The notes under the pieces are model-generated. The model did no database searches. It saw nothing but the letters and a program-made list of their open reading frames with translations, and was not told where the DNA came from. Positions 1,424 through 41,400 of a stretch of DNA of 64,000 bases are shown one piece after another. This stretch comes from Octopus sinensis. Lineage: Eukaryota. The translations under genes were made by a program, and so were the position numbers. The stretch is taken from NCBI RefSeq assembly GCF_006345805.1, contig NC_042999.1:141856001-141920000 (forward strand). Direction: 5' to 3'. The stretch's first letter is position 1. Every line of letters begins with the position of its first letter.

Positions 1424-2184
1424 GGGATACCTCGTTTCTTTTCTTTCTTCTAATGAAATTAAAATCTAAGGTGTTCGAGCATTTTAGGCAGAATAAAAAT
1501 ATTTATTATTTTCAAATTAAGGGTGAGGAAAATGTACGAGTGCAAAAGAATACCTTCCATAACTTATTAAGCAACACAAGAAAATTCACATTTTCTTTTA
1601 CAAAACACCAGACTTCTTGGTGTTTTAATTATGTATTATTACTTTAGAATTACAATGAATTTTAAACAGTTGGCATTCCGAAAATGTTTGTGCAAATGAT
1701 TTGGCTTCTATGAATAGCTTTTCAATAAGAAATTATAGGCCCTCATGTTGAGTCGTACAGAAAAGAGAAGTAGGTTCAATATCGAAACTCGAACCCCGTA
1801 TCTAACACTTGTCAGACAGCCGTGTGTAACCTATTCATCAACAGAATGCCTGTAATGCAATCGATAACGCGGTTGGGTTAATTCCTGGTTTTTGCCTCAA
1901 TTTTGTTTCTTCTATCTCATATCATTTTGCGTTATACATCTTAGCAGGTAAATTTTCGAAGATTAAAAATGACAATTGTAAACTTCAGAGCTCTTTTTTC
2001 TTTATTCACTAAAGAAATCCGAATTGCTTGATGTTATTTAATTTGTTGCAGCCGTGACAACTAAGGAAAGCTATATCAGTGTAGTAAATTTCCTTCCTCG
2101 ATATATTTTGTTAACTAACCAAGCATTTACCTACACGATACCTATTTGATTATAATTTGTATTCCGTAACTTAGCTCACCGACA

Positions 2185-2193
2185 GTCACGTGA
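2185..2193. promoter_or_regulatory. Candidate E-box GTCACGTGA upstream of THAP exon copy 1 (duplicated at 3316-3324)
   Basis: Palindromic TCACGTGA about 200 bp before the ATG in a CpG-richer region. Motif match only. Confidence 0.35.
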
Positions 2194-2386
2194 TACACTT
2201 ATTGCCTTCCATACTTTATGCTTAGCTCCGCTACACAAAAAAAAAATCTGTTATTTAATACTTATAAGGTAACAATGTTGTTATCTCACTTTTATATTCA
2301 TTGGAAACAACCAGTCTCCAACTTTGGACATTTTCTCAACTTTCATAATGTTTTAAAATACGGCAGGGTTTGAATGAATTTCCATT

Positions 2387-2639
2387 ATGCCGTCTGACTG
2401 TATTGTTAAAGGCTGTCACTCGAGCAGTCGTATAGACAAGTCAATAACATTTTTTCTACTACCTTGGGACAACATACAGCTCCGAACAATCTGGGTTAGA
2501 TTGGCCGGTTACGACCCCCTCGATGCCAACGACGTGAAGCACATAACTAGGGAGCATAGCATTTGTAGTCTCCATTTTGTTGATAACCAGAATAACTTAC
2601 TGCACAGCAGCATTCCGACTCTGAATCTTCCTATCCAAG
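2387..2639 (+). CDS. First coding exon, copy A: complete THAP zinc-finger DNA-binding domain
   Basis: MPSDCIVKGC...P..W...CSLHF...IPTL fits the C2CH THAP signature. Donor CAAG|GTACGA at 2640 is phase 1; the ORF-track tail is intron read-through. Confidence 0.85.
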
Positions 2640-3517
2640 GTACGATTGTTTATTCCCTAGCTTCGTTAAAACACAAACTCATGCTCGTAAACGAGTTAAT
2701 CTATATTTATGTTTCGTTAACTTTCTATTACTAAATTGTATATTCTCCTTGTTTTGTGGGCGCGGAGGAATTTTTTCTTCGACGTCTCCGTACGAACTTA
2801 TTTAACTAAGGGGATTATTTTGGAGCGGCACCGATTGAAGTGAGTCTTAAGTTTTGTCTTTTGAGCATAATGGGACGTAACCCAACTCTTCTAACAACAT
2901 TAAATTTGTTTTTCCTTGAGGTAAAATAAGGCGTTTATTATTCCAACAGAAATGTAAAATAGAAATTATTACGTGAATGTTCATTAACTAATATTTTTGA
3001 TTGACGATCTTTGAATATGACGTACCCATTTCATTTCATGTTCAAGATGAAATATAAATTTGAGCGATGTTGCAGTATAAAGTACCCTTTTCACTTTCAC
3101 AAAACTCGTTATTACTTGACTAGCTAAGCACCGAACTGCGTAAACAACGTTCAACATATTGAATGGGTGAAGCACGTATTCACTGCATGACTTGTGAAGA
3201 GAAATATCAGTGTAGTAAATTTCCTTCCTCGATATATTTTGTTAACTAACCAAGCATTTACCTACACGATACCTATTTGATTATAATTTGTATTCCGTAA
3301 CTTAGCTCACCGACAGTCACGTGATACACTTATTGCCTTCCATACTTTATGCTTAGCCCCGCTACACAAAAAAAAAATCTGTTATTTAATACTTATAAGG
3401 TAACAATGTTGTTATCTCACTTTTATATTCATTGGAAACAACCAGTCTCCAACTTTGGACATTTTCTCAACTTTCATAATGTTTTAAAATGCGGCAGGGT
3501 TTGAATGAATTGTTATT

Positions 3518-3770
3518 ATGCCGTCTAACTGTATTGTTAAAGGCTGTCACTCGAGCAGTCGTATAGACAAGTCAGTAACATTTTTTCTACTACCTTGGGA
3601 CAACATACAGCTCCGAACAATCTGGGTTAGATTGGCCGGTTACGACCCCCTCGATGCCAACGACGTGAAGCACATAACTAGGGAGCATAGCATTTGTAGT
3701 CTCCATTTTGTTGATAACCAGAATGACTTACTGCACAGCAGCATTCCGACTCTGAATCTTCCAATCCAAG
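3518..3770 (+). CDS. First coding exon, copy B: THAP domain (D4N, I21V, N70D relative to copy A)
   Basis: Same THAP signature and the same phase-1 donor at 3771. Four nucleotide differences from copy A within the exon. Confidence 0.85.
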
Positions 3771-4982
3771 GTACGATTGTTTATTCCCTAGCTTCGTTAA
3801 AACACAAACTCATGCTCGTAAACGAGTTAATCTATATTTTTGTTTCGTTAACTTTCTATTACTAAATTGTATATTCTCCTTGTTTTGTGGGCGCGGAGGA
3901 ATTTTTTTCTTCGACGTCTCCGTACGAACTTATTTATCTAAGGGGATTTTTTTGGAGCGGCACCGATTGAAATGAGTCTTAAGTTTCGTCTTTTGAGCAT
4001 AATGGGACGTAACCCAACTCTTCTAACACCATTAAATTTGTTTTTCCTTGAGGTAAAATAAGGCGTTTATTATTCCAACAGAAATGTAAAATAGAAATTA
4101 TTACGTGAATGTTCATTAACTAATATTTTTGATTGACGATCTTTGAATATAACGTACCCATTTCATTTTTTAAAAGTTCAGTTTTGACAGTCGGCTGCCA
4201 ATTATTCGTAGTGTATTGCAAAAAACCTTTCTATTTCAAAGTTTTGATGTAATTTCATCAGTTTTCAGAATATTTTATTTCATGTTCAAGATGACATATA
4301 AATTTGAGCGATGTTGCAGTATAAAGTACCATTTTCACTTTCACAAAACTCGTTATTACTTGACTAGCTAAGCACCGAACTGCGTAAACAACGTTCAACA
4401 TATTGAATGGGTGAAGCGCGTATTCACTGCATGACTTGTTAAGAGAAACTCGATATTTCGCAGCCTTTTAGTGTTGTTTGTAAGAAAAGGGCATATTGCA
4501 ATTTGCAAAATATACCCGTGATGGCGTGCAGTTGGATATCGTTTATTGTTTCAGTAAGAAAAATGTATTTTTTTTCTATAAAAGCAGTGGGTTTTTTGAG
4601 TTGCTGCTATTGATTTAAATGAATACCTATAACTAAATAATATAAAGTAGACAAAACCAGAATGATTAAAGACTTGTATGTTTCTGTATTTGCTACTGGG
4701 TTCAGAGGACCCAACTGTTACCGGTGGATTCAATTTAACGAAACAAAATATTTCCACAAAGTATGCAAGAGTCTAATTGAGAGGGTGTCATTGGAGTTGC
4801 GAAGAAATGTTTTCTAGAAGTACTACATAACCGGAAAACACACTGTTGAATATTATAGGAAATAAAATTGCTCATAAGCGTTCGTATGTAAGAATGTCAT
4901 TATGACATGCATTTAATTACTGCATTGTGGATCACGGTAGGAACTTTCATCAATACTGCTAACCGTCAAGTATGTTCCCCAG

Positions 4983-5027
4983 TTAATGACTCAAAAATGA
5001 TCTCATGTCAAGAAATAATTGAAGCAG
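4983..5027 (+). CDS. Putative 45-nt symmetric (phase 1-1) coding exon, (V)NDSKMISCQEIIEA
   Basis: ttccccag acceptor and CAG|GTGAAT donor; open in the frame set by the THAP exon. Confidence 0.4.
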
Positions 5028-6133
5028 GTGAATAGTACATTTGGAAAACTTTTCAGTAGTTACTAAAACATGTCATTGCAAATTGTAAAATAGTGATGTA
5101 GCGTAGGGTGCGCGAATAGCACAGGGTGACCAATTAAATATACTTGTTTGCTGTAGGCAATTAAGGACGGGGACGGCCAATTTGGCTACTGTACAGAGCT
5201 GTTGAAGAGATCTGCAGTTGCCAAACTGGTATCAACAAACGTGAAAGTGACACACTACTCAGAGAATGCCTTTTTTGCCTGGATGTGGATATCTGCCTTC
5301 ATATTTCAGCATTAAATAATTATAAAGTATTGGGGATTGAAATGAAATGATAGGATCCATATTGTACTGTAGAGACATGACTTGCTCAGAAGGCAATTTC
5401 TTAGATGTCACTTGTATACATAAATAGAATTTTGGTATAAGAAAATAAAATACAATATTTCATTATATAGTGGGAAATTCCTCATGGAAATTATCAAAAC
5501 ATCTACAACTTTAAGAAGGTTATGTGTTTGATAAATAGTTATTGGTCTGACAAAATAAGATGGCAATATACACAAGAAAGAAAAATAGGATATAAGAGAG
5601 GCTTGATAATGGATGGTAAATATGAATATATTGCTTAATGTGGGGTGCAGCAAAATCATGCAATTGATCTAATTTTAAATAAAGAAAGCACACAGTAAAA
5701 GCACTCTTGTATAGTAATGTGGTCCAAGATTAATTGATACTGCTTATATGGCAACAAGAAAATGTAAATAGTTCTTCCTAGAACCTTGAGCTTGTACTTT
5801 TTCCCAAACAGGAATTTCTCCCAGTGACACACATATTGCACATAGTTGTTTAAATATACTTCAGCATTTAGAAAAATTTCTATCCATATCATATACTAGG
5901 TTTCAAACTTGAAACTACTCTTTCATCCTATAATTATATGAATGTGCCTGAATTGGAATCAAATAAAAATGGAATTTGGTATAGTCAGCTTGTTAACTGT
6001 CACTCCTTTGGAATTTCCCATGCATAAACTGGTGTTATTTCTTTAGATAAACTTTTACAATGCTAATGTAAATCACACTTAATTGTTAAAATATCACCAG
6101 TTTTATTTCACTGTTCATTTGTGTGTATGTATG

Positions 6134-6176
<43 letters not shown>

Positions 6177-6184
6177 TATATATA

Positions 6185-6747
6185 TCATCATTGTCCGCTT
6201 TCCATGCTGCTATGGGTTGGACGGTTTGACTGAAGACTGGCAAGCCAGGAGGCTGCACCAGGTTCCAATCTGATCTTGCAAGGTTTCTACAGCTAGATGC
6301 CCTTTTCTAACGCCAACCACTCTGAGAGTGTAGTAGATGCATTTTACATGCCACTGGCACGGGAGCCAGTCAGGCGAATCTGACTGGCTCCTGTGTTCGA
6401 TGCCAGTAGCCTCTGACTAGTTCGTTTGCCGTGGCACATAAAATGCACCATCTAAATGTGGCCGATGCCAGTACTCCCTGACTGGCCCGTGTGCCAGTGG
6501 AACATAAAAAGCACTATCCGAACGTGATCGATGCCAGGCCCGCTTGACTGGCTTCTGTGCCAGTGGCACATAAAACGCACCCACTAAACTCTCGAAGTGA
6601 TTGGCATTAGGAAGGGCATGTAGTTTAGCAGTAGAAACATTGCCAGATCAGATTGGAGTCTGGTGCAGCCACTAGCTCTCCTGGCCTCAGTCAAACCATC
6701 CAATCTATGCCAGCATGGAAAATGGATGTTAAACAATGATGATGATG
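6185..6747. mobile_element. Two RTE-LINE/SINE 3' tails head-to-head (minus copy ~6185-6375, plus copy ~6376-6747)
   Basis: Both outer ends carry the (CAT)n/(GAT)n tail and the ccatgc..gcatgg motif seen at 59450-59610. A 12-bp hairpin marks the junction. Confidence 0.8.
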
Positions 6748-7265
6748 TATATTTTTATTAATATTTAGCAACAGTGACTCAAAGTTCAAAAGTTTCGTGT
6801 ATCAGGACATATATATATATATATACATACATACATCCTGTACACGCACACACACACACACACACACGTGTGTTTCACCTGACAAAGCAGATGACAGAAG
6901 GTCATATCAACTGATGGTTCTACAGAAGATCTGACTTCGTGCACAAACTCTGCATACACACCTCCCTTGTCTATTGTTTTGTGCATGCATCCATCTATGT
7001 TTATTGTCCACTCTATACCTTTAGGATACATTATTACTGCTCAAATTGATGATATAGGACTTGATAGGTTGCCTTTTCTTACTCAAGACAAGGCAACCTC
7101 TATAATTATAAAGCTCTCAATACTATCTGGTTTAGGAAGGACATCCTACCATAAAAACCATGCCAAAAGTGAGACATTGGAGCAAAGCATTGTCCTTCAA
7201 CTAGTTAAATCTTCTCAAACTGTCCTACCCATGCTAGAATGGAAAATGATGATATATCTCTATAT

Positions 7266-7896
7266 ATCATCATCATCGTTTAACGTCCATTCTCCATGCT
7301 AGCATGGGTTGGACGGTTCGACTGGGGATTTGGGAAGCCAGAAGGCTGCACCAGGCTCCAGTCTTGTCTGGCAGTGTTTCTACACTGGATGCCATTCCTA
7401 ATGCCAACCACTCCTTAAGTGTAGTGGGTGATTTTTATGTGCCACCTGCACAGGTGCCAGGCGAGGCTGGCAACGGCCACGGTTGGACTGGTGCATTTTA
7501 CGTGCCACCGGCACGGAAGCCAGTCGAGGTGGCACTGGCATCGGCCACGATTCGGATGGTGCTTTTTACGTGCCACCGGCACGGAAGCCAGTCGAGGCGG
7601 CGCTGGCATCGGCCGCGATTCGGATAGTGCTTTTTACGTACCACCAGTCCAGGGGTCCTGGCATCTGCCAGGTGCCAGTCATAGGATTGGTTCAATTTCG
7701 ATTTCACTTGCCCCAACAGATCTTCGCAAGCAAAGTGGGGTTGGCATGGGTGCCTGTCGTCGGATGAGATTCGATATCGACTTTGCTTGCCTCAACAGGT
7801 CTTTATGTGTCCAAGGGAGGAAAGGCATGCATAAGTGGGCTGGACTCACTTGTCCTGCCTGGTCTTCTCACGCACAGCATATTTCCAAAGGTCTCG
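7266..7896 (-). mobile_element. 5'-truncated RTE LINE 3' end (last ORF codons, 3'UTR with ~60-bp repeats, GAT tail)
   Basis: Its reverse complement matches the ORF end at 58695-58743 (ctttgga..tatgctgtgcgtgagaa) and the tail at 59430-59610. Confidence 0.85.
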
Positions 7897-8226
7897 ACGG
7901 CAAAATGTCTGTGTGTGTGTCCTTTATACAAATTCACAATTTTTCAGTTAGAGGGATTGCACTTTCTATGGTCATTCAAAACCATTCAAGGGTGGTCGTG
8001 CACATCTTTACATTTCCCCATAAGAAAATCAATAGAAGTGACTTTTTTGTGAATTTTCTATCCAAAATCCAATCAAAATGCCCGAAACTTGATACGCCAA
8101 TTAAATGCCAGCTAGCTGTATGTGATTGGTCGGAGATTTGGACAGTACTCGCATGTATGTGCGCATGCAGCTGTATATGCATGCACTAGCACTATGACCC
8201 GGCATTGCCAGGTCATAGTGCTAGTG
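7897..8226 (-). mobile_element. Possible non-autonomous Helitron/Helentron-like element
   Basis: Starts (minus strand) with ACTAGCAC.. inside a perfect 16-bp hairpin (8184-8226) and ends in acacacagacattttgccgt, where the LINE interrupts it. Family call is from recalled motif style only. Confidence 0.35.
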
Positions 8227-9029
8227 TATGTATATAATAATGGACTCTCTTGTTAAGAACAAAACATGACTCAGGAGGAAACAAAGCATTGTTGTTGAAC
8301 AACATGCATAAATTTACTTTCAAATCAAATTTGTATGGAACTTATCTAATGCACTCCTTTTGTAACCTGATGTGCCAAGTTATGCAAAAAGAAAAAAAAA
8401 AAAGAAGCATGTTATGGAATACAGAGATGCCAAGCCCAAACAGATGATTGCTGATCTCTTTTTACCAGTATCATGTGGCAAGTTCCCCTTGCTGAAAAGT
8501 TTTGTCCAATACTACATAACATGTGCCTAAATGGATCATAGGCACAAACTGGAATACAGAAAATATTATATACTTAATGCTATGTTGAGATTTATAGAGT
8601 TCTATCACTCTTCAAGTGGTCTTACAATGTCACCATTTCTCATTTCAAGTACTTATACAACACCACTACTTATCGCTAGAAGTACCTTCCATGTGGGGAG
8701 CGGGTAACTAACATATAGTTTTTATTACTACTAACTAGCGTTCATATCAAATCTCTTTTATATAAAACTATGTAAAAAGTAGGTGTAAGACAAAATGAAA
8801 ACGCTCTCCTAAAGGTAGGGCTATTTGTACGAGGTGAATGCAGAATATCAAATTCTGGTGTACATCTGAAGCCATGTATGTTTACGGTTTTAATGTAGGG
8901 ATGTTTTGGAGTGAACCCACTCTTTTGAAAGTTACCAATGTAGACTGAATTCAGATTATAATGTTGCAGAAGAATCCACTAGCCTTTATTCAAGCCATTG
9001 TTGTATCTCACGAATTTAAGATTTGAAAC

Positions 9030-9475
9030 TTCGGTTAATGTTGACAAATCGAAAAAAAAAAAAAATAGTGCAACGGGTGTAATAAAAAAAGGTGTAGGAA
9101 ACGAATATGAAAACAAAAATTCCGGGAAAGCAACGGGGGTGGAGAGAGGCCTTCGAAAAATTCACAAGATCCGATGTGTTTCCCTCATAACTTTTAGGAA
9201 AATGTTTTTTTTTAGTGAAATTTTTTATAAATACCTTTCAAACGGTGTAGATTACTATTATAAAGAAATTTGTGGGGAAAATCTTTTCCTGGGGGCTGAG
9301 GAGAGGACTATGGAAAATTCACAAGATCCTAGTTTTTCCCTAGTAACTGAAAACATAATCCTTTTGAAGTCACAAATTAGGCTTTTCCTCAGGAATTTAA
9401 ATGCTAAACGTCCCTTTGAAAGGTTCAGGTCCTTCTATATATTATATAGATAGATATGTGTGTGTATACATACAT

Positions 9476-9531
<56 letters not shown>

Positions 9532-10086
9532 GGACCCAAACCCCTCTTCAGAGGGATGTTTAGCATCTAAGTTCCTGAGGAAAAGCCTAATTTGTGATTT
9601 CAAAAGGATTATATTTTCCTCAAAGTTACGAGGGAAAAACTCAGCTCTTGTGAATTTTCCGAAGTCCTCTCCCACCCCCGTTGCTCTCCGCGCATTTTTG
9701 TTTTCAGGTTCGTTTCCTACTTGGGTGTGAAGTAGAAAGATGTACATTTTCCTCTATGTTACGAGGTAAAAACATCGGATCTTGTGAATTTTCCATAGTC
9801 CTCTCCCCACCCCCTCGGAAAAGATTTTCCTCACAAATTTCTTTATAATCGAAATCTAAACCGTTTGAAAGGTATTTTTATAAAATTTCACTTAAAAACA
9901 CCTTATTTTCCAAAAAGAGGGTAAAACATAAGATCTTGTGAATTTTCCGAAGGCCTCTCCCCACCCCCTGTTGCTTTCCTGGAATTTTTGTTTTCATATT
10001 TGTTTCCTACACCTTTTTTTTTACACCCGTTGCACTATTCTTTTTTTGATCTCGTTTTCTGGTAATAATGTCAACATTAATCGAAA
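9030..10086. mobile_element. ~1.05-kb foldback element, palindromic around a central (TG)/(CA)/(TA) microsatellite
   Basis: 9030-9445 is reverse-complemented at 9528-10086. The right arm has one extra internal subrepeat (about 9645-9776). Confidence 0.85.
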
Positions 10087-12409
10087 TTTTTCCTGTTTTT
10101 AACAGAAGCTGTAACTATTCTGCTACTCGCTTAAAAGTTATTCTAAAAATAAACAATCACATCATCAAGATCTCAGAGCTGTGATATAATTGATGAGTTA
10201 TTGAAAACAATGTGAATAATGAGAATAATCTGAATGCTTAAGAGTTACGGAGCATTGTTTAGGTGTTGGACAATTACATCAAAAATGTTTCTGAAATTAT
10301 ATTAAGATTATAGTTTTAGAAACAAAAATATTAGAGAGACATTTTATTAATAATATTTATGATATTAAATGGAAAGACCCCCCCCCCATTTTCTCGCAAT
10401 TTTTTTCCCAAAAACTCGCGTTTTCGGAATTTTTAAATGTCTGCCCCCCCCCTTACTACCTCCCAATTTCTTCGTTTTCACTTCTTTCCGTAACCTTAAC
10501 TCTAAATTAGTGGTGGGGTACAAAAGGAACTCTTGCCTATTATATTCTCAGGTGATAAGAATTAGAGCAATCAAAACAATCGCTTTTTAAATGCATAAAT
10601 GCAACGCACTGCCTTTAATATCACAGAAAAACCAAGAGGGTTTATGGGAATTTTTCTAGAATATAATTCAGATTTTAATCATAAAATGTAATTGTTGTTT
10701 TTATCTCGATTGGGATGTAAATGATTGTCTTTGGAGTAACTTGTCCTGTTCACTTTTCAGTGTATCTCATGTACGGAAAACTCACCGACCAACAAGTTAC
10801 CTGTTAGCAAATTCACTTTTAAGCAATTCGGTTTATATTTAATAAAAGCTTAAATTCTCTTGTCATTCGAACATATGATAGTTTTTGTAGTTTTGGGAGG
10901 GTCATTACGTCGGTAATAATAAACACACGCACTATTATTATTGGTGCAATGAACCTCCCAAGACACAAGATTTGTTTCAACACGAATTCACATCAAGAAT
11001 CTTGCAAACCAAATGCATAAATAAAATGATAGTTCAAATGTTTTTAAAATATAACGTTTGAATTTTTCGAATCAAAGAGGATACAAAAAAATGTATATTA
11101 TTAGCCATTTTATTAAAGAAAAACAACTGAAAAAAGACAGTACTGTGGAAATGTGTGAAATATCAAAAATAAGCCATAGACGAATGAGTACAGTCGGTGA
11201 CACAAAAGTGAACACACCCACATTGTCGATGCATCAAAAATTTGTGAGTTAACTTTTTAACAAGTTGTTGATCACCGTTGATCGGCAAATTGCTGTTGGG
11301 GAATTTGTAAGCAGTGCATTTAAAACTTCGTTATTTAATGTATCTTTTTTGTGAATTGTAGTGTATCGAGCATATCGATTGATCACATAGAAGTTGTCTC
11401 GTTGGCTTGTGTTAGATTGTTTTTCATGAGTGCTTTTGCTATTGTATTTAATGAACGTATATATTCGATAATGAACATTTTCTATTTTAGTACTTTAAAA
11501 AAAAATTCAATATGTAACTTGCGGGTGTGTGGTAGAGTTACGCCCCTTTATGCCTAAATGAAATGATTTTGAAAGTCGGTCGTCTCCCTGCAAAATCCCC
11601 CAACAAAACAAGTAGACCGTAGCGCAGTTTCAAAAGAAAAGAATTCTTCCGCGGATACCAAACTATTTATTTTTCTCCTGCACAGAGGTCCATGTTTATT
11701 ATTATTTTATTAATAGTTATTCATTTCTTACGTTGACATACGACGTTAGAATAATTGAGTTGCCGATTTGAGAATATGTTCATTGTTTTCTAACGAGTAA
11801 CAATTCGTGTGTTTAATAGCTTACAGCCGAGATTCAAAACGAGTTATGCTTGTATACAATAGGACTCATCACTAAGAAGGTAATAAAGATAACTGCTGTG
11901 AGAGTGTCCTTTCAAGAGGAAATTACAAATCTATTTCTTTTTTAATGTACTTTCTTTCTAATTCAATCAGAATGTCTCAAAATTAATGTTATTTATTTAA
12001 AATTGCTTTCTGAAAATTAACTGCCCAAACTGTGTAAAATAACTTAGTTTCTTTCTCTGAAGTAATTTACTTTTCTCTCTTCTCTATACTTTCGTTGGAA
12101 GCAAAGCGAGTAGAGTCATTAAAATATCCACTAAATGATCAGAAGTTTGCATCCTCTGATTGGTTTGTAATTTGGCAAAGACGATCGGTAACTAAATGGA
12201 TACCATAAAACGATGATTTACTACTAAGTAAAACGGAATCACGAGAAAACACGAGCGAAAAGGAGAGCCTCTACGCAGTCATTTGGTTGGTAGAAATAGC
12301 AGCCAAAGCTCATATCTACTCTATACACATAGGTGGAGAGGGTTGAATATTACATCTGTGAAAACTAATATATATAATAGAGTATAATTGTGACTTCTTC
12401 ATTTAAATA

Positions 12410-14245
12410 CTTGCATTAATAAACCGATTCCTTTTTGAGAATTTTGATCACTTATATTGCCGAACATGTTAAAGTGTAAATCCTTTCATGTGCAACTTAA
12501 AATATTCTCGAAGCGCGATAATGCAAATTATTTTAATTTGCTTCGAGATTAAAATAACCTCGAAACAAATTAAAATAATCTCAGAGCAAATTAAATAGAT
12601 ATTTTTTTATATGAAAACGTAACGGACGTTTGTGTTTTGAAGTGCTTGGATTTACGTTGGATAGTTTTAAATTGGAATACATTGCATCGTTTAATTTATC
12701 CCTACAATGCTACGTTTGCTTACAGATAATGAAAATCAGTCCGAAAACAGCGAAAGCTTGACTCAAAGTATAAGTACTTCTATTTTACGAGGTGTCAAAC
12801 GAGGAAGCAAGCGAGGGCCATACAAGAAGTCTGCACTCGAAACTCGAAAGCGTGTACTGTCTGCAGCTGAACGAGGAAAAGATTTGAAATCTATTGCTGC
12901 AACACATGGCGTGAAGAAGACAACTGCATATAATTGGGTGCGCAGAGATCGTGCATCGCATTTGCGCCGTGGAGGTGTCCGTGATAAGGTGAAGAAGATA
13001 GAGCATGAACATATCGAGTCACTTATTGAGAGGTTAAACGAATGTCCACAATTAACATTGAAGAATCTTTGCGAACATTTACTTTCAAAGTATGGATTGA
13101 TTGTGTCCGAACAAACTATAGCCAATCATCTAGATGGAAGAATGATTTCATTGAAGCAAGTACATTTATGCCCAGAGACGGTCAACAATCAGAAAAACAA
13201 GCTTTTGAGGAAGGAGTACATCGAGACAGTGATGAAATCATCTGCTGAAGGAAAGTTCTTTGTATATATCGGCAAGTCAAATGTCAACCTTTTCCTTAGA
13301 AGAAGTAAAGGCGGGTTAATGAAAGGAACACGTTCAGTTCCGCATCTGCCTTCTTCCAAAGGTCCGACTATCCATATGATTGGGGCTGTTTGTCAAGCTG
13401 GATCGATCGATTTCCAAAGAACAAGAGGAAGTTATCGGAGTGACTCGTGCAATGTGTGGGTGCGAGACCTGTTGCAAAACGTTATTGGCAATGGTACTTC
13501 GTGTGAACAAATAGTGATGGTTACTGACAATGCCCCTTGCTACTCGGATTTAGAAAACGTCTTAAGTGAGTTCCAAGGAGCAACACTTCTTCGTCTTGCG
13601 CCTTATTCACCCATGTTAAATCCAGTTGAGGGTGTCTGGAGTGTGATTAAGACTCAACTCAAACAGAAGGAAGCCAATCAGCTTTCCGAATTGATAGCAG
13701 GTGATCCACAAAATATATTATCAAAATCTGAATGGAAACTTAGATTTGTGGAAAGGTTGATTGACGAAAGTGTAACCGTCATTACGCCTAGTATGTGTTT
13801 GAATTTCGTTAATCACATCCAGTTGTTATTTGGACGTGCCCTCCAAATGAAAGATATGCCTGTTGGTCAGTAAAAACAGTTTTACAAACTCATCATGTGA
13901 GAATGTTGTTGGTATGGCTATTTATATGACTGAATCGTTTTAACTTGAGGTGTGTAGGTACTTTGGGCTTGTAACTGTAGTTCTAAAATAGATGATGCCC
14001 ATAAATTCATGAAAGATATTTTGATACTTGTTCTATAATTATTGCCAGTTAAAATTAAACTAATTTATTACTCGTTAGATAAAGGCACCGGGAATATGGT
14101 AGGTGGCATTACCTAAATTAGAAAAGCAAAACATTAATTTTGTTTCGAGATTATTTTTATGTTTCATTGTTATTTTATTTCGATATTATTTTAATTTTCA
14201 ATGAAAAGGATTTGGTTCTGTGGTGAAAATGCACACTAACCACTG
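12410..14245 (+). mobile_element. IS630/Tc1-superfamily DNA transposon with degenerate TIRs
   Basis: Right end CACTG|TA (14241-14247). The left end tttaaatac..tgcatt..aaccgattcctttt is a deleted version of the right-end reverse complement. Subterminal taaaataa(c/t)ctcgaaacaaa repeats are inverted at about 12530-12600 and 14130-14200. Confidence 0.7.
12707..13873 (+). CDS. IS630/Tc1-like (DDE_3) transposase, 388 aa, uninterrupted but first catalytic Asp replaced
   Basis: N-terminal HTHs (GVKKTTAYNWV; LTLKNL..VSEQTIANHL), VTDNAPC and APYSPMLNPVE motifs with D-x33-E spacing. The expected YIDE motif reads YIGK. Confidence 0.9.
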   Translation: MLRLLTDNENQSENSESLTQSISTSILRGVKRGSKRGPYKKSALETRKRVLSAAERGKDLKSIAATHGVKKTTAYNWVRRDRASHLRRGGVRDKVKKIEHEHIESLIERLNECPQLTLKNLCEHLLSKYGLIVSEQTIANHLDGRMISLKQVHLCPETVNNQKNKLLRKEYIETVMKSSAEGKFFVYIGKSNVNLFLRRSKGGLMKGTRSVPHLPSSKGPTIHMIGAVCQAGSIDFQRTRGSYRSDSCNVWVRDLLQNVIGNGTSCEQIVMVTDNAPCYSDLENVLSEFQGATLLRLAPYSPMLNPVEGVWSVIKTQLKQKEANQLSELIAGDPQNILSKSEWKLRFVERLIDESVTVITPSMCLNFVNHIQLLFGRALQMKDMPVGQ

Positions 14246-14443
14246 TATTTAAAACTGGGAAAACGATATCGTAATGCGTCGTCTTAAACGCCGAGAACTT
14301 AGAAATGACGGTCTAACGTCTACAGTAATCGGGTTGGGTGAACCAGACTCATAGCGCTTGCGCGAGATTGTTAGTTGTTATCTTGGTGTCACATGCGTTG
14401 TGACTATTGTTTCTACGATTTCAAGATATCATAAAGGCTCGTC

Positions 14444-14983
14444 ATGGCGCAAACACCTACACGAAGGAAATACCAAGCTGGGTTTAAGTTGAACGTAATA
14501 GCATATGCAAAGAAGCACAATAATTGCGCTGCTGCACGAGAATATGGTGTAACGGAGAAGGTGGTGAGAGATTGGAGATTAAAAGAAGATATATTAAAGA
14601 AAATCCCTAAGAGCAAATGTGCAATGAGAAGAGGTAGTGCACATTGGCCAAATTTAGAAAATTATTTAGCAGATCTAGTTTGCGAGTATCGAAAAAATGG
14701 ATACGGTATATCAAGAAATAAAATCCGCAATATGGCACTCGAGTGGGCAAAAGAAAATCAAGCGGATTGTAAAGACTTCAAAGCCACCGCTTCATGGTGT
14801 AGTCGATTCATGGAGAGACATAACTTAGTATTGAGAAAGAGAACCAAATTAGCGAAGAAATTACCTACAGAGCTTGACACCGAAATAACTTATTCCCGTC
14901 GTTCTAAATTAATGCAGCGTAAAAAAAGTAATTACTTTCTTTATATCCCTTTGTCTTTTTTATTTGTAATTTCCGGCCTCTAA
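14444..14983 (+). mobile_element. pogo/Tigger-type N-terminal ORF: Brinker-type HTH plus CENP-B/Tc5 HTH, truncated before the DDE domain
   Basis: RRKYQAGFKL..AAAREYGV..VRDW, then WPNLE..L, FKATASWCSRFMERHNLVLRKRT. Followed by pogo-like subterminal cgtcttata motifs to about 15140. Confidence 0.85.
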
Positions 14984-16526
14984 CATGCTATATTTCGTGT
15001 GAAACTTTGTCTTATACGTTAAATATAAGACGAAATAAACATTTTGAGGGGAAATTTACGAAGTCGTCTTATATACCTTGTCGCATTATAGACCGACCCA
15101 CACGGTCATTTTTCTATCGGTGCATTATTATAGTCGGGATTAACTTTTCTTGACACCGCCATTAATGTTTATGTTGGCGTTGGTATATGAAAAGTTGCAC
15201 AACGCATAATTCAAAATCGAAGGTGGTACGAAATCTCGAAGCGAAAAAGATAAAATAGCTTGTTTACTGTTTGGATTAAAAACCCATACGGCGGAAGTAA
15301 AGAACATGAACTGCACCCACTTTCGGCTTTTGGGGAGTTTTTTTCCTACAGAAACCCACTTTTTTGACTGCAGAGATTCCGAATCGGCACTTCTTGTTAC
15401 TTTCACTCTTCCTACGAAATTGTGGGTTTCTTGCATAAGTTTTGTTGCACTTTTTCAACTCTTTACTAAAAATTCCCTGATAGGAATAAAAGTAATGTTT
15501 TATAACTTTCTTGGTCCAAGCTAAGTATTATATGTTTCTCTTCAGAACATGTTCTCGGCTGGTGTATGTTCCTGGAAAAGTATTTTAGAATTTGGTGCCA
15601 TTTAATCAGATTGTATGTCTGTCATCGTACTTCAATAGATGAAAATGAAGAGTTTTTTTTTTGTTTTTTTTGTCCCAAAGGTTTATAAGTAAATGGCTAA
15701 GACAACTAGCACATTGGTGTAAATTGATATTCCACAACAAGCATTCATTGTGTTACTTAACTGTGCTTACCGAGGAATTATGAAAAATATATGATTTAGA
15801 ATACGTTACACTTCTGCTTTATCTGTTTTTCGTTTGCTGCTAGAGTCACTATTGTTAAGGGCTCACAGTTTTCAACAATTCGTGAAAGCGTGAACATTTA
15901 CTTTCTTTTTGTATCAAATATAGAAGTTTTAAAATTATTACTTAAAACTGTTACTAATAATTTTAAAATGTAGATTATATATTGTTATCAGTGAGAACTC
16001 ATAATAGTTGCTCTTTGTAATGGGATAAACCGTTAATAATTAATGTATCTGATAATTATTTGGAAGGTGAAGATCCAACGATGGTAAATTTTTACTATTA
16101 CACTTGTCTCGTCAGTATGTATGGGTTTCTTAGAGAACAAGTGGAGTCCGACGGTTTTGATGGTCATATTCGTTCAAAACTCGTAAAAAAAGACTTAGGA
16201 AAAACGTACATATTATCTTCAAAGTATGACAGATGAAATAGTACGACTTTGGCTTATTGAGATTATGGTATACTGAGAAATTATTTCCGATTCATGATCC
16301 ACACATTTTCAAAAAGTAACTCAATAATGACTAAGTAGGTATAAGCTGTTAGCAGTCTGTAACCAAATCGTTGCTTATTTAATTTTCATGAATAGCTCTT
16401 TTCTTTCTCTCATCACAAATGCATCTAAAAGAAAATAAAAGAGTATTTCAAGAAGTGTTATCTTTATATCGTCCATGTAGTATTACATGAAAATTATTGA
16501 ACCTATAAACCACAAATGAATTTGTA

Positions 16527-16880
16527 CGTGGTTGAGAAGTTTGCTTACCAACGACATGATTTGGGGCAGTCCCTCTGAATGGCACCTTGGGCAATATCTT
16601 CTTCTATAGTACTGAACTGATCAAAGCTTTATGATTGGATTTGGTTGACAGAAACCGAAAGAAGGCCATCATATGTGTGTTTGCATCACATGATAGTTGT
16701 AAATGAGCATCACCATACCAGTGGTGTCCTTCGTTTCTAAACCTCTGTGAAACCATGTCTGACCAAGGGGAAATAATACGGTGCTTGGAAACAGGAGGGT
16801 TGGCAACAAAGGCATCAAGCCATAGATGATTTGCTTTGACAAATTCTGTCTGGCTCGTATAACCATTGAAAAGTGGAGTT
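16527..16880 (+). mobile_element. Degenerate tRNA-type SINE
   Basis: Head matches 57327-57476 (gtttgcttacc..ggcaccttgggcaa..gaaaccgaaagaa). Confidence 0.6.
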
Positions 16881-17111
16881 TAAAATGATGATAGCAATTT
16901 AATTTGCTTCCTTAATTACACTAGTAAAAGTTGACTAATGAGTTAATTAAAACAAAGCTTTATTGATTTTAGAACTTTTGTAGCCACAGCATTTCTAAAT
17001 TATTCTGAATGGTAATAGGGTTAATTTACCAGCACATAATTTCATATTTAGTAAATATGGTTATACAACCATTGGGGTATTAAATTAAGATGGACAGTAA
17101 TCCACAATCTG

Positions 17112-17482
17112 TCATCATCATCATCGTTTAACGTCCACTTTCCATGCTAGCATGGGTTGGACGGTTCAACTGGGGTCTGGGAAGCCAGAAGGCTGCACCA
17201 AGCCAGTCAGATCTGGCAGTGTTTCTACAGCTGGATGCCCTTCCTAACGCCAACCACTCCGTGAGTTAGTGGGTGCTTTTTATGTGCCACTGACACAGGT
17301 GTCAGACGAGGCTGGAGAACGACCACGCTCGGATGGTGCTTTTTATGTGCCACCGGCACGGAGGCCAGGCGAGGCTGGCAACGACCACGATCGGATGGTG
17401 TTTGTTACGTGCCACTTGTATGGAGGTCAGTTGATGCGGTGCTGGCTACGGCCACGTTCAGATGGTTCTCTTATGTATGCCT
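17112..17482 (-). mobile_element. RTE-LINE/SINE 3' tail with three ~60-bp repeat units
   Basis: Close reverse complement of about 59300-59610. Confidence 0.85.
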
Positions 17483-17586
17483 GCAAATTAAAAAAAAGTA
17501 TTCATAATATATTCATTATCAGTATAAATAGTAAATAATATGAAGACTGTATCAATGTATTTGACACTGTTTTATTTAAATTTCAG

Positions 17587-17651
17587 GTTCCAATGAGTAT
17601 GACAAGATTCTTGAAACTGCCTCAGAACTCTATACAGCTAATCAACTTCCG
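17587..17651 (+). CDS. BTB gene internal coding exon (phase 1-0), SNEYDKILETASELYTANQLP
   Basis: tttcag acceptor and CCG|GTAAAA donor; frame continuous with the next exon. Confidence 0.6.
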
Positions 17652-17835
17652 GTAAAAATAATATTAAAATTTCTTAGTAGTAGCTGGCTGTGTTAAAAGG
17701 GTTTCATCCATTTGAAAAGTTATGTAAGCACTCTGCTGCCCACACTATTGTTGACCCAATACATCATGCTATAAATAGATATAAGTATATGGACCCTTCC
17801 ACATTTACATGTACTTTTTCTATATTAGTATAGAG

Positions 17836-18036
17836 CAGGGATGGGCAACTTTTCCTCAATTGGAGGTCACATCGTACCATTTCCAAGTGGAAAAGGTCCA
17901 CATGATAAAACACATGCATGAAATATTACTTGCCTACTTTACACTGAATTTTTTGCAGTTCTTCTTAATTTTATTTATCTTAGTATGAAATTAGTAATCT
18001 AGAAACTTGTTGAAGGCCGCAGGTTGCCCATGCCTG
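17836..18036. mobile_element. hAT-Charlie-type MITE
   Basis: TIRs cagggatgggcaac / gttgcccatgcctg and a perfect 8-bp TSD gtatagag (17828-17835 and 18037-18044). Confidence 0.9.
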
Positions 18037-18530
18037 GTATAGAGTCATGCACTTAAATTGTGCTATTAATAAAATTTGTAGACTCGAGTTCAGGTAGTCA
18101 ATTCTTTGGAAAAGCATAATGTGCTTCACACTGTGATGCTTCCCAGCAATGACAAGTGTTAATAGAAACTAACACATCTTTTATTGTTTCCCTTATGATT
18201 TTTGTGCAAAATAACATTGTTTTTTCTTCAATATTAACTTAAAGTTTTTGGGAATGCCAAGTAATATTTCCATATTCTTTAAATAACATCTTTTTTACAC
18301 AAATAAAGGATTGAGATTTTTAATTGGGGATCTGAAAATTATGCCTTCCCCAGTGTCTTTAGTGACATGTCAGCCAATATTGATATTAGGGAATTAAAAT
18401 CATGTCCAAATCAGATTAGAAACTGGCAACACATGAGGTATTGAGAAAAAAAAGAATTACTGAAAGGTATGTTAAGTGATATTCACAACCAACTATTTTG
18501 ATTTTCATTTACTTCTATTATTCCTTGTAG

Positions 18531-18721
18531 GTAAAATCACAAGTGATTAAATCAGCCCATCAACAAATTACTCCTTCATATTCTTTAAATAAGTTAGATG
18601 TGGAACACCGGCGGAAAAATCCTTCTTCTTCAGCATCGAAATCCATCAATAGCTTATCAGATGCAAACCAATCATTTTCACCACCTGCAAAAGTTCCTAA
18701 AAAACATAACTTCTCTAAACC
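18531..18721 (+). CDS. BTB gene internal coding exon (phase 0-2), Ser/Lys/Pro-rich
   Basis: ttccttgtag acceptor and CC|GTGAGT donor; open reading frame. Confidence 0.7.
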
Positions 18722-20051
18722 GTGAGTGATTTCAGATTCATAACTTTTTTTTATTTTTAATTAATTTATTTTTTTAGATGTATTCATATTATTCATGCCA
18801 TTAAGCTATAGGAAAAAAAGAATCATGGATGGATAAAAGTTAAGTTGCTTTCTTCCTGGCTAAATGGGTAATAATGTGTATTCTGTTCTGTTGTTAAAGG
18901 AAAATGCTGAATTTCTAGACAAGACAATTCATAGTCAAACTGTCCAACCCATGCCAGCATGGAAAACGGATGTTAAACGATGATGTGAAAATGTATCTTC
19001 TACTGGTTAAAATGATGAATATTTCTGTTGTTCAATCAGCAAGCTCCTTAATCATTTGGATTATATTGTGTATGGGGCTAAGTATTCCACAGGTGCACAT
19101 GCCCTTAATGAATCGGGATCAGTATGACACAGTGTATCACAACACTGGCTCTTTGAAGTACAAGGACTGTCCATTTGACAGGCTTCTGTAGATTCCACCT
19201 ACCCAGTTTCACCCATAAGACCGAAGGCTATGGCAGAAGACACTTGGCCAAGTTAATGCACAGTGGGATTTAACCCAGGACCTCAGTAGTATTGAGTAAA
19301 GTATTAACTATTTTGCTAGTGTAAGTTTTACTTTCTGTTTTGAGTACAAAATTACATCTACTCAGAATAACTAGCATCTCAAGACATTTTTATTTATGAT
19401 ATCTTGTTAGGAAGGGCATCCAGCCATAAAAACTATGCCAAAACACACTCAGAAGAATGGTGCTGGCTCCCACCTAGCCAGCTCCATGCCAGCATGGAAG
19501 GAGGATGTTAAACAATGATGCTGATGATCTTCAGTAGCAATGCAATAACAAAATGCTTGAATGTTATATAGCTGAAAGAAACTATAATAGCATTCTCAAA
19601 ATTTATGTTCTATGTTTTATACCCAAGGTTGATTTCAGTAGAACAAATACCTATGTAGCAAGCAGTGCCCTTATTCCTAAAGACTCATCAGTGAATTCAA
19701 ATGGAACTTATTGTCAGCTAAGCCATGAACCTTGTTATAAACCTTGCCCAGTAAAACCTGTAATAATTCTGCACTAGCCTTTATTTCATTGATGAAATCA
19801 AATTATTTTAAGGCTGTCTTTAATTCTAGTTCTCTTTGTGTGATGAATTGTTTACTATTTCATGATATAAAATTTTTTGATATTAGTTTTACTTTTTGAA
19901 AGTTTATCTAAAATTCTCATACAATTCTATTTGCTTTTCATTATTAAAGTAACTTTTGCTGTAGATTTAGAAAATTATCAAAAATGATTTGGTTGGATTT
20001 TTTTTCTGCCTATAATTGACTTTTTTTATTTATTTTTTTTTTTTTTACTAG

Positions 20052-20382
20052 TTTTATTTCAGCTGGTCAAACTCATGTTATTGACAAACCAGCTGCTGTT
20101 TCATCGTCAACTACTGATACTAGATCCCAACCAATAGATTGCTCTAGTAGCTCTTCCAAAAATCAAAGTTTTTCATCAAAAAATATTCAAAAACCACAAA
20201 CTGCTCCTAAATCTGAGAAACAGTTGCAAATGAGTCCAACAATAGATGTATCTCACCAAAAAGAGAAACGCATGCTTGTAGTTCCAAACCATCAGTCATC
20301 TGTTATGTCAAACATGTCATCATTATGGAAAGCTGGTCGGTTGTGTGATGCTTACATCAGCAATGGTACAGTTAGTATTATG
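20052..20382 (+). CDS. BTB gene exon (phase 2-0) encoding the N-terminal part of the BTB/POZ domain
   Basis: ttttactag acceptor and ATG|GTAAGT donor; HQSSVMSNMSSLWKAGRLCDAYI matches the BTB start motif. Confidence 0.8.
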
Positions 20383-21938
20383 GTAAGTTTGCATTCAGAC
20401 TATGTTTGTAGATTCTTCTTCCCTTCTCTAGAAGAAGAGTTAATTAAAATAGCGTTTACTTTTATTTTGCTATTTTGTTGGAAGTTATAAGTATAGTTAA
20501 GTGACTCCAGATATAAATGCCTGAGCAAAGTATTGAAGTGAAAAGAACTAAGAAAGGAAAACAGTGTAGATGGAAGTAAGCAAATAATATGAATGACATT
20601 TATTATGTCATTGCCTTTCTACTGTTTGTTGACTACCACCACTATTAAGTGGAAGATAATGACAATTCTGATGACCACATAATGCTTTTCTTTGAATGTA
20701 TTTTTATTGGTGGGTGAAGACTATTGCATTTACAATTTGGAACTGTTGAGGATTCTTGAACTTTCTAAATACACTTAGAATAAATCATCAGCAAACAGCT
20801 ACACTAATTTTTCTCAACTATATGCATATTTGGTTCCAGTATTGACAACAGATTTCATTGTTATGTAAGAGTCAAAGATGGAGAACACTGGGATGGTTCA
20901 GCAGCCAATAGTTATGGGTTGGGAATGTTGACAAATTAAATATTGGCATATGACAGTCTCAGCTTTTTACTGCGTCATATTCTATTTAATTCCGTTTTCA
21001 CTGGACCATTAAAAGAACACCACACTATCACACTAATTACAAAACAAGCATCCTTCTACTAGGAAACTAATATAATTTGACTTACTGCAGCTCTTTTTAG
21101 AAAAAAAAAACTATATAGATGCCATTTTGAACTCAACTGGTTTGATGTTCTTGTCCTCCTCATCGACCAATTTTACTCAGTTAAAAATTTGGGGAATACA
21201 TTTAGTTTTGATTTAACTTGAGTTATGTTAATACTTTAGTAAAAAATTCTAGTATAAAAAATTTATTTTACTGCTATAAAGCTCAGTTTTACTTAATAGT
21301 AAACTTGAAAGGAATTAACATGAATTTGTTAGGATTGTGGGATGTGAAATAAGTTAATCCAAAGACCAAGCCTTTGGTAATACAATAGTGTTAATTTCTA
21401 ACATAGACACCATCATACTATTTGGTAAAGAGTATAAATAATTATGTGACATTTAAATAGGTGAACGGCAAATTTAATCTCCGGATTTGAATTCAGAACA
21501 TAAAAGTACGGAACCAAATATCACGATGCAGTTTATGTGATGTTCTATTGGTTCTGTTAATCCACCATCTTCTCTAGACAAGACAATTCATGGCCTTAAA
21601 CATTGGGCCAGAAATTATAGAGGAGAGGGTTAATTGATTATATCAATCCTAGTGTTCAACTGGTACTTATTTTAACAACTCCAAAAGGATGAAAGGCAAA
21701 ATTGATCTCAGTTGAATTTAAACTCAGACCACAAAGCCTGAAGAAATGCTGCTAAGCACTTAGTCTGATGTGCTAACGATTCTGCTAGGTTGCCACCTTA
21801 CTATCTTTTAATAATACTACTAACTTGTGGGATTTGAAATTAGGGCAAATGGGATTTGATTGGAATATGTTCCCTCTGGGGATAAGTTAATCTTTTGTTT
21901 TCATTCTATTAATTTTTGCCTTTGATTTTCATTTGCAG

Positions 21939-22928
21939 GTTCATCAAATTGTCTTTGGAGCTGTATGTCCCAAAGTGTTACCTGTATTTTACAATGCTTT
22001 TCATTCTGACTTACCTGCTGTAACATTCCCTTCCACTGTGAGTGAAGAAGCACTATTAGCTTTCTGTGAGTATATGTACGATGGTGTGCTGGAACTAGAT
22101 AAAAACATCCTGTCGCAATTGAAAATTATTGCCCAGTGTCTTGACATGCAGGGTTTTGATCAGCTTTGTAACAACCAGTTAAAAATAGCAGAAAATTCAG
22201 TAACAGTACCAACAGATATGTTGGAGTCAATACTTACTGAACCTTGCTCTTCATCAGGACTTATCTCAGACAATGCTACAAACACTCAAATTACATGCCA
22301 AGATAATTTCACTCCTGTTTCTCAAGTAATTCCTTCCAAACTTATCACTCTTTACAATCGTAATCTTGAGGAAAATTCCAATGTACTTTCCAGCAAATTT
22401 CCAACAGAGATAAAAAGAAAAGTTGTGAAACAGGAAATTTCTGATACTAGTAATGAACAAGATGATATTAACAGTAACCATGAAGATGACCTGATTAACA
22501 AACCACAAATCAAAGTAGAATTGATTGGTCCAGATGATCATCGATATGGATACCAGGACTTTTTGTTAGCACAACAAGGGTCAGACATTTCTGATGCAGA
22601 TTTAACTCAGTCAAGCTTACTTTCTCATAACACATCTCTGGATAACTTTGAACAAAATTCTGATATACAGCAAACTGAACAATCATTATTATCATCTTCA
22701 TCCCTCTCTCCTCATTTCTCACTTCATTCAGAATCTCATCCAGTTGGCTACATAACTCCTACATCAATCCGTAGACTAGTAAGTTGTGATAAATTCCAAC
22801 ATCTGAAAAATTCTGAGAATTCTAAGCCTTATCCTGTTAGTTTGTTCAGTGCAAATTATGAACCAATATCATTATCTTCATCCAACTTACAGTTAGTAAA
22901 TGTTAAAAAGAAGCATATAGCTAGATGA
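21939..22928 (+). CDS. BTB gene exon: rest of the BTB domain plus a long acidic/Ser-rich tail (probable last coding exon)
   Basis: tttgcag acceptor; VHQIVFGAVC..ALLAFCEYMYDGVLEL..LKIIAQCLDM..C. Stop at 22926-22928; a possible internal donor GTAAGT lies at 22779. Confidence 0.85.
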   Translation, partial: VHQIVFGAVCPKVLPVFYNAFHSDLPAVTFPSTVSEEALLAFCEYMYDGVLELDKNILSQLKIIAQCLDMQGFDQLCNNQLKIAENSVTVPTDMLESILTEPCSSSGLISDNATNTQITCQDNFTPVSQVIPSKLITLYNRNLEENSNVLSSKFPTEIKRKVVKQEISDTSNEQDDINSNHEDDLINKPQIKVELIGPDDHRYGYQDFLLAQQGSDISDADLTQSSLLSHNTSLDNFEQNSDIQQTEQSLLSSSSLSPHFSLHSESHPVGYITPTSIRRLVSCDKFQHLKNSENSKPYPVSLFSANYEPISLSSSNLQLVNVKKKHIAR

Positions 22929-41180: not shown

Positions 41181-41400
41181 ATGGTTAACTTTTGTGCTGT
41201 TAACGGCTGTTCAAGTCGTGCAGATCGCGATAGAGCTAACTCATTTTACCGTTTGCCAGCCATTATCACTAACCAAGGAGAAGAAACTAGAGAAAGATCG
41301 CGAAAACGTCGCGAACAATGGATAGCTAATATTAATCGACCAGATTTAAAAGAGACCAGTTATGCATATGTCCGGGTGTGCTCAGATCATTTCATATCCG
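41181..41400 (+). CDS. THAP/CG-1-like gene exon 1: most of the THAP domain
   Basis: MVNFCAVNGC..FYRLP..REQW..RVCSDHFIS; phase-1 donor CCG|GTAAGA at 41401. Confidence 0.9.

Follow-up and report, generated by a model that had tools for sequence, protein, structure and literature searches.

The window analysed here is a 64,000-nucleotide (nt) stretch of Octopus sinensis DNA (assembly GCF_006345805.1, contig NC_042999.1, positions 141,856,001–141,920,000, forward strand). Its region 2387–22928 corresponds to the gene LOC115209547. By sequence comparison, positions 1–32928 of the window are 100% identical to locus L003 of O. sinensis (GCA_006345805.1, CM016861.1), where the window position equals the L003 position minus 22278. 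The DNA is AT-rich and of animal type. The region very probably represents the downstream two-thirds of LOC115209547, a gene in which a single constant 3′ module is combined with any of several 5′ modules, and a THAP-BTB protein of 609 amino acids (aa) is among the products. The constant module consists of four exons that encode a linker, a BTB domain of the transcription-factor (ZBTB-like) type, and a C-terminal region in which short motifs are conserved. The acceptor at 17587 serves at least four 5′ modules, namely a CG-1-like, a THAP (present twice in tandem), a Tc1/mariner-like, and a pogo-like module. These alternative DNA-binding 5′ exons are mostly transposon-derived. The features are listed in Table 1.

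Table 1. Features of LOC115209547 and of the neighbouring paralogue LOC115209549, in window coordinates (HTH, helix-turn-helix; ORF, open reading frame; a slash marks the splice site)
Feature	Position	Strand	Details
Conserved non-coding block upstream of THAP copy a	2159–2223	+	About 165–230 bp 5′ of the exon; contains GTCACGTGAT (CACGTG E-box, palindromic)
THAP first coding exon, copy a	2387–2639	+	ATG, 84 codons + 1 base, phase-1 donor CAAG/gtacga
Second copy of the conserved upstream block	3290–3354	+	Within the tandem duplicate
THAP first coding exon, copy b	3518–3770	+	ATG, 84 codons + 1 base, phase-1 donor CAAG/gtacga; translation matches the deposited 609-aa protein
Tc1/mariner-like insertion, intronic	12478–14213	+	Imperfect inverted repeats 12478–12596 and 14133–14213
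Exonised Tc1/mariner-like HTH + DDE_3 ORF	12707–13865	+	386 codons, donor G/gtcagt
Pogo/CENP-B-like alternative first exon (BrkDBD + HTH_Tnp_Tc5)	14444–14927	+	Phase-1 donor A/gtaatt; isoform P0012 (CAI9720209.1)
Common exon 1	17587–17651	+	Phase-1 acceptor tttcag/GTTCC, used by every 5′ module
Common exon 2, linker	18531–18721	+	AG/GT borders
Common exon 3, linker + N-terminal part of BTB	20052–20382	+	BTB start at about 20275
Common exon 4, remainder of BTB + S/T/N/Q-rich C-terminal region + stop	21939–22928	+	
Motif IKVELIGPDDHRYGYQ, psi-K-x-E-P...Y-G form	22509–22556	+	Downstream of BTB; conserved across the cephalopod family
Motif PYPVSLF, YP-x-x-LF form	22827–22856	+	Near the C-terminus; conserved across the cephalopod family
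LOC115209549 first exon, N-terminal part of THAP	41181–41400	+	Phase-1 donor
Mos1-type HTH_48 fragment, mariner-like HTH ORF	A few kb upstream of 54365		E=1.5e-8
Mariner transposase fragment (Transposase_1)	54365–54736	+	E=7e-26
Reverse-transcriptase ORF (RVT_1)	57451–58740	+	E=1e-21
LOC115209549 second exon, C-terminal part of THAP + CG-1-like region	61960–62702	+	After a 20.5-kb intron

The four common exons all have AG/GT borders and keep a single frame through to the stop at 22926–22928. Their in-frame join into a BTB-coding sequence had been proposed in an original prediction made from the letters alone, and it holds. The prediction also noted about 145 stop-free codons ahead of the first methionine of the common part, where the count is 144. 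Because every 5′ module ends in phase 1, and the common exon starts with GT, all heads fit the single acceptor at 17587. The junction codon is GGT (Gly) after the THAP or Tc1 module, AGT (Ser) after the pogo module, and CGT (Arg) after the CG-1 module. These predicted junction residues match the deposited proteins exactly, and the phase-1 donor and glycine junction that the original prediction assigned to both THAP exons are among them.

Pfam searches of the other plus-strand ORFs of at least 60 aa up to about 18.7 kb revealed no other domain and no further DNA-binding exon. Among the ORFs of at least 70 aa in the 22 kb upstream of the window (L003), judged by eye only, a CG-1 exon, mariner fragments, a reverse-transcriptase fragment, and nothing else were recognisable. 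Rfam and tRNA scans of the window gave no match.

Each THAP exon is preceded by an in-frame stop four codons 5′ of its ATG. The encoded domain matches Pfam PF05485 above the curated threshold of 23.9 bits, with a score of 39.1 (E=1.4e-9), and covers profile positions 1–87 of 87. All four C2CH zinc ligands, C5, C10, C60, and H63, are present, and the finger aligns to the THAP11 structure 2lau (E=1.1e-5) with the four ligands in register. In addition, the sequence SIPTLNL, read by eye, occupies the position of the AVPTIF-like box. The two exons are part of a recent tandem duplication at 2073–4448 with units of about 1131 and 1244 bp. They are spaced 1131 bp apart and differ at 4 of 253 nt, and the arms of the duplication are 97–99% identical. 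The duplication copies the THAP exon together with the conserved upstream block, and both the ORF and the donor are kept in the two copies. Argonauta has the THAP exon in a single copy. The duplication could be an assembly artefact.

The orthologous locus of Argonauta hians (L002) has a deposited model that carries the CG-1 head only. An intact THAP exon nevertheless lies at L002 15775–16027, between the CG-1 exon and the BTB exons. It keeps the ATG, the 84 codons, and the phase-1 donor CAAG/gtacga, shares 79% amino-acid identity with the Octopus exon, and joins in frame to the Argonauta common exons. The ratio of non-synonymous to synonymous substitution rates (dN/dS) between Octopus and Argonauta is 0.088 for the THAP exon (dS about 1.3), 0.072 for the BTB core, 0.41 for the linker, and 0.26 for the C-terminal region. 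In window positions 1–23500, conservation in collinear order with the Argonauta locus is limited to the THAP exon, the four common exons, and the 65-nt upstream block; the remaining matches are dispersed repeat sequence. At the nucleotide level no other collinear conserved block lies between the THAP exon and the common exons, and the THAP exon is therefore without an alternative conserved splice partner. Judged from these comparisons, THAP is encoded by a real first exon that is conserved and under strong purifying selection. The comparative evidence supports THAP-BTB as a functional isoform, and the Argonauta annotation is probably missing a THAP isoform.

The 65-nt upstream block, about 200 bp from the THAP ATG, has hardly changed between Octopus and Argonauta (81% over 69 nt). 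With its E-box GTCACGTGAT, it may be a promoter-proximal element of the THAP-first transcript.

The join of 3518–3770, 17587–17651, 18531–18721, 20052–20382, and 21939–22928 encodes 609 aa and matches the Octopus vulgaris protein CAI9720207.1 (P0001) along its entire length with 100% identity. The label of that entry, ‘XP_036357329.1 ... isoform X1’, is copied from its best match. The THAP-BTB protein is thus already public as a deposited, uncharacterised isoform and is not new as a sequence. Three other O. vulgaris proteins from the same gene contain the same four BTB exons. CAI9720206 (719 aa) has a CG-1-like head (Pfam E=3.5e-8). CAI9720208 (911 aa) has a Tc1/mariner-like HTH + DDE_3 head (DDE_3 E about 6e-17 to 7e-17) and maps to 12707–13865 plus the common exons. 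CAI9720209 (686 aa) has a pogo/CENP-B-like head composed of BrkDBD and HTH_Tnp_Tc5 (E=1.7e-13 and 1.9e-11) and maps to 14444–14927 plus the common exons. The BTB exons hence also start from first exons other than THAP, as the CG-1, Tc1, and pogo heads show; the original prediction had set out this outcome beforehand as one at odds with its model. The region around an ETS-like motif at 15291, suggested there as such a start, is without conservation relative to Argonauta.

In O. bimaculoides, the THAP-headed RefSeq isoform X2 (XP_014774298.1; P0002, 976 aa) has the order THAP-Tc1-BTB. Two independent pipelines, those of O. vulgaris and O. bimaculoides, accordingly model THAP joined to the BTB exons. 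The O. vulgaris annotation is made of consensus models built by EVidenceModeler, to which splice forms were added by PASA updates from Iso-Seq and RNA-seq data (PMC10700109). Because splice forms are added there from transcripts, a non-consensus O. vulgaris isoform most likely has transcript evidence behind it. Splicing in vivo is taken here from the annotations of others; gene structure, domains, and conservation are observed directly.

The CG-1 module is encoded by two exons upstream of the window, at L003 10001–10531 and 20173–20241 (about 12 kb and 2 kb upstream). In P0004, its CG-1 domain (CAMTA-type, PF03859) exceeds the Pfam cut-off of 23.5 bits, at 33.6 bits and E=3.5e-8.

The Tc1/mariner-like ORF serves as a first exon in the O. 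vulgaris isoform P0013, which starts at the ATG at 12707. An internal acceptor, ttacag/AT at 12726, also makes it a symmetric phase 1-1 cassette of 1140 nt (12726–13865), which follows THAP or CG-1 exons in O. bimaculoides models (P0002, P0014). Besides DDE_3, Pfam identifies transposase HTH models in the ORF. It is open in O. sinensis, O. vulgaris, and O. bimaculoides, with 86–88% amino-acid identity to O. bimaculoides. Comparison with PDB sequences gave no match at E≤0.01. In a search at E≤10, a weak match to Sleeping Beauty (E=0.45) brings two residues of the DD34E triad into alignment, the second Asp and the Glu; the first Asp is apparently replaced, by eye, by Gly in O. sinensis and by Ser in O. 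bimaculoides. This weak alignment and by-eye reading suggest that the Tc1-like copy is catalytically dead and domesticated. In the gene models, both the DDE_3 + HTH exon and the pogo-like exon join the BTB exons, and CG-1-BTB forms without them coexist, which is the arrangement of a host-transposase fusion. The Tc1 and pogo heads look like transposase captures of the octopus lineage, and the THAP head is older.

The BTB domain lies in the middle of the protein, at residues ~245–372. It spans the last two exons and matches Pfam PF00651 above the curated threshold of 20.5 bits, with a score of 27.4 (E=3.9e-6; profile positions 3–107 of 110). An AlphaFold model of the monomer, calculated from a 32-sequence alignment, has a pLDDT of 87.3 and a pTM of 0.77; a first model from a 6-sequence alignment reached a pLDDT of 47.8 and was discarded. 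The best Foldseek matches of the model are ZBTB9, BCL6, PLZF, and ZBTB7A, with TM-scores of 0.77–0.86 normalised to the target (0.8–0.86 for ZBTB9, BCL6, and PLZF). A profile of the BTB region, searched against solved structures, matched ZBTB17, ZBTB18, BCL6, and NACC1, down to E=1.5e-10, with ZBTB17 and ZBTB18 at E about 1e-10. As modelled, the fold is of the transcription-factor (ZBTB) type. A segment MLVVP, a candidate for the N-terminal extension through which BTB domains form strand-swapped homodimers, precedes BTB helix 1 and is of high confidence in the monomer model. The FxLRWN motif of TTK-type BTB domains was not found, and the corresponding stretch reads NMSSLWKAGRLCD. No isoform of LOC115209547 has a Pfam match to C2H2 fingers.

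The region C-terminal to the BTB had been described as an acidic tail. It is indeed mildly acidic, with 27 D/E against 19 K/R in the last 218 residues, but it is mainly rich in S, T, N, and Q (81 of 218). The psi-K-x-E form of IKVELIGPDDHRYGYQ resembles that of a SUMOylation site.

Several observations weigh against reading the locus as a set of functional heads on one BTB. A THAP + linker query returned no transcript across the THAP-to-17587 junction, and its sole match, the Logan-derived P0031, is a genomic read-through ORF. The recovered O. sinensis RefSeq isoforms are all CG-1-headed, and the Argonauta annotation contains no THAP isoform. The Tc1 and pogo exons are absent at the Argonauta locus, and the Tc1 element retains its inverted repeats; because of these two points, the Tc1 and pogo heads are considered younger and their function less certain. 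Both could be functionless chimeric transposon-gene transcripts.

The products themselves can also be arranged differently. The Octopus THAP exon might mainly be spliced to the cassette 12726–13865, with a THAP-transposase-BTB protein of about 990 aa as the principal product. O. bimaculoides isoform X2 has this exact structure and the cassette is phase-symmetric, but the O. vulgaris annotation contains the direct 609-aa join. Argonauta has the THAP exon and no Tc1 exon, so the direct THAP-BTB join is ancestral. A mainly THAP-transposase-BTB output is a possibility that we regard as doubtful, and it is compatible with the layout of one constant module and several heads.

It is considerably less probable that the THAP exons stand outside the BTB gene, either as a nested gene with THAP only or as the remnant of a P-like element, and that the THAP-BTB models are annotation chimeras. 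Such a separation would account for the missing junction-spanning transcript and for the O. sinensis RefSeq and Argonauta annotations without a THAP isoform, and reading through the THAP donor does give an ORF of 118 codons. It is opposed by the dN/dS of 0.09 (dS about 1.3), by the conservation of both the ATG and the phase-1 donor, by the lack of any alternative conserved downstream exon, by the agreement of the two independent pipelines, and by the recurrence of the THAP-then-BTB order in paralogues, Argonauta loci, and Haliotis. The exact model of the original prediction, a protein of about 624 aa with a 45-nt exon at 4983–5027 between THAP and 17587, is highly improbable: this segment has an AG acceptor, a GT donor, phase 1-1 borders, and no stop, but it occurs in no deposited isoform recovered, lacks conservation with Argonauta, and is a chance match among 603 segments of the same intron that are stop-free, AG..GT-bordered, phase 1-1, and 30–150 nt long, 42 of which remain after a crude splice-quality filter. 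The supported product, without it, is the 609-aa protein.

A second gene of this kind begins in the window. The paralogue LOC115209549 lies head-to-tail with LOC115209547 on the same strand and has the architecture THAP + CG-1-like + BTB, with its BTB exons beyond the window end. A close relative of LOC115209549 is found as an uninterrupted 901-aa THAP-CG-1-BTB ORF in a 3.5-kb Logan contig of run SRR8281692, with 82% identity over the first THAP exon. The contig is most simply a spliced mRNA. Another isoform in the protein cluster of this relative carries a ZSWIM3_N/FAR1-like head instead.

The long intron of LOC115209549 contains much transposon debris (Table 1). A dispersed repeat that is richer in G+C and has tandem units of 63–68 nt inside it is found at 6393–6581, 7433–7645, and 17272–17415, at ~58.7–59.5 kb, and at ~63.4–64 kb. 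Copies are also present at the Argonauta locus; the repeat yields long spurious ORFs and gave no hit in the tRNA and Rfam scans.

The wider family became visible in an exhaustive phmmer search that covered 1.84 billion representative proteins; a word-indexed search with the BTB profile gave short fragments only. The phmmer search yielded 153 matches at E≤1e-3, including 20 at E≤1e-30, and the closest ones have a mid-protein BTB. Pfam detects a BTB in 31 of 35 representatives. The N-termini among these 35 match THAP (6), HTH_Tnp_Tc5 (3), CENP-B_N (3), FLYWCH (3), C2H2 (2), DUF3504 (2), DDE_1 (1), and ZSWIM3_N (1, which also matches FAR1). Members with names belong to Octopus species, Argonauta, Acanthosepion, and the gastropod genus Haliotis. 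The architecture is shared by the neighbouring paralogue and by genes at other octopus loci, in Argonauta, in cuttlefish, and in abalone.

The most telling deposited example is the abalone gene LOC124116851 of Haliotis rufescens (P0072, P0073, P0179–P0191), in which at least 12 alternative N-terminal DNA-binding heads are joined to one identical BTB. The heads are C2H2 (X1, X6), MADF (X4), FLYWCH (X2, X13), and seven different THAP fingers (X5, X8–X12, X14). The five THAP isoforms X8–X12 have a common sequence from KHFVGGRG onward. The His zinc ligand therefore appears to lie in the shared sequence, such that the N-terminal two-thirds of the finger alone would differ. Across the molluscan family, the head types comprise THAP, FLYWCH, MADF, C2H2, CG-1-like, pogo, Tc1, and FAR1/ZSWIM3-like domains, and the pattern of interchangeable heads on one BTB is visible in the deposited isoforms. 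The unusual THAP-first, BTB-second factor without C2H2 fingers that the original prediction put forward is encoded, as indicated by the O. vulgaris model and by purifying selection. It is neither the sole product of its gene nor a one-off.

The architecture suggests how such proteins may act. Each isoform would be a sequence-specific regulator of chromatin or transcription, with its target set by the head that is spliced on. The shared ZBTB-like BTB would dimerise and, with the conserved C-terminal motifs, recruit partners. A common BTB could also permit heterodimers between isoforms with different heads. The younger heads would fit transposase capture by alternative splicing, here on the 5′ side. 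The DNA binding, dimerisation, and regulatory role of the isoforms are predictions from their domain content.

The BTB fold and profile are closest to those of the vertebrate ZBTB/POK proteins, such as BCL6, PLZF, ZBTB9, and ZBTB17. By analogy, they presumably work on a common principle, in which a BTB that dimerises is combined with a sequence-specific DNA-binding domain. However, the octopus protein has no C2H2 fingers, its DNA-binding domain is N-terminal, and the BTB identity is only ~20%. The octopus and abalone genes are not ZBTB/POK members, because they lack C2H2 fingers and their BTB is not N-terminal.

The THAP head shares the C2CH signature with THAP11 and THAP1, in register with THAP11. 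In human THAP proteins, the finger is accompanied by coiled-coil or HCF-1-binding regions and is not known to be paired with a BTB. Octopus THAP and CENPB factors have been reported to carry mostly BTB/POZ domains (PMC10027918, 2023). That study presents them individually, as THAP genes or CENPB genes, treats the BTB as transposon-derived, and does not describe the shared-exon structure.

Transposase capture through alternative splicing has given rise to host-transposase fusions in tetrapods, including KRABINER and SETMAR (Cosby et al., bioRxiv 10.1101/2020.05.07.082677). As in those genes, the transposase-derived domains in octopus sit on their own exons and are spliced to a host domain, parental and fusion forms coexist, and the Tc1-like insertion can still be identified as an element. 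The octopus case differs in that it occurs in a mollusc, the capture is on the 5′ side with transposon-side donors, the partner is a BTB rather than KRAB or SET, and several independent captures are found at one locus. Successive stages of capture stand side by side here: an old, strongly constrained THAP exon, a pogo exon cut to its DNA-binding part, and a Tc1-like element still with inverted repeats.

Close counterparts are Haliotis LOC124116851 and other molluscan RefSeq models, all uncharacterised, which likewise combine a variable head with a related BTB; the octopus set of heads differs from that of the abalone gene, and the BTB identity is ~26%. The nearest conceptual parallel is provided by Drosophila lola and mod(mdg4), in which a constant 5′ BTB block is spliced to many alternative 3′ DNA-binding exons, encoding C2H2 fingers in lola and FLYWCH in mod(mdg4) (PMC11426971). 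The octopus gene similarly combines constant BTB exons with alternative DNA-binding exons, four heads on four common exons, and in either case a set of regulators with a common dimerisation module results. In contrast to the Drosophila genes, its variable exons are 5′ and include first exons, its BTB is constant, 3′, and mid-protein, and its heads have unrelated folds (THAP, CG-1-like, Tc1 HTH + DDE, and pogo HTH). The BTB of the octopus and abalone genes is ZBTB-like and lacks the arthropod TTK motif, of which PMC11426971 reports no case in Mollusca. The octopus exons are collinear on one strand, so that cis-splicing suffices, with no hint of trans-splicing.

A variable-5′-head layout, the inverse of lola and mod(mdg4), was not described in the literature searched, and its absence there is not proof of absence. 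On balance, we favour the view that molluscs hold a mirror-image counterpart of lola and mod(mdg4), in which mutually exclusive 5′ head exons, many of them captured from transposons, are placed on one constant BTB, and that the octopus battery is still recruiting insertions. The THAP-BTB protein itself adds little, and the layout of the locus is the more useful result, as it shows one dimerisation scaffold re-aimed by swapping 5′ DNA-binding heads. Provided that the isoforms are expressed and form heterodimers, even a few such genes could supply cephalopods with a large combinatorial repertoire of regulators. The layout, taken with the abalone gene, would then mean, if true, that the lola/mod(mdg4) strategy was reinvented independently, and in inverted form, outside arthropods.

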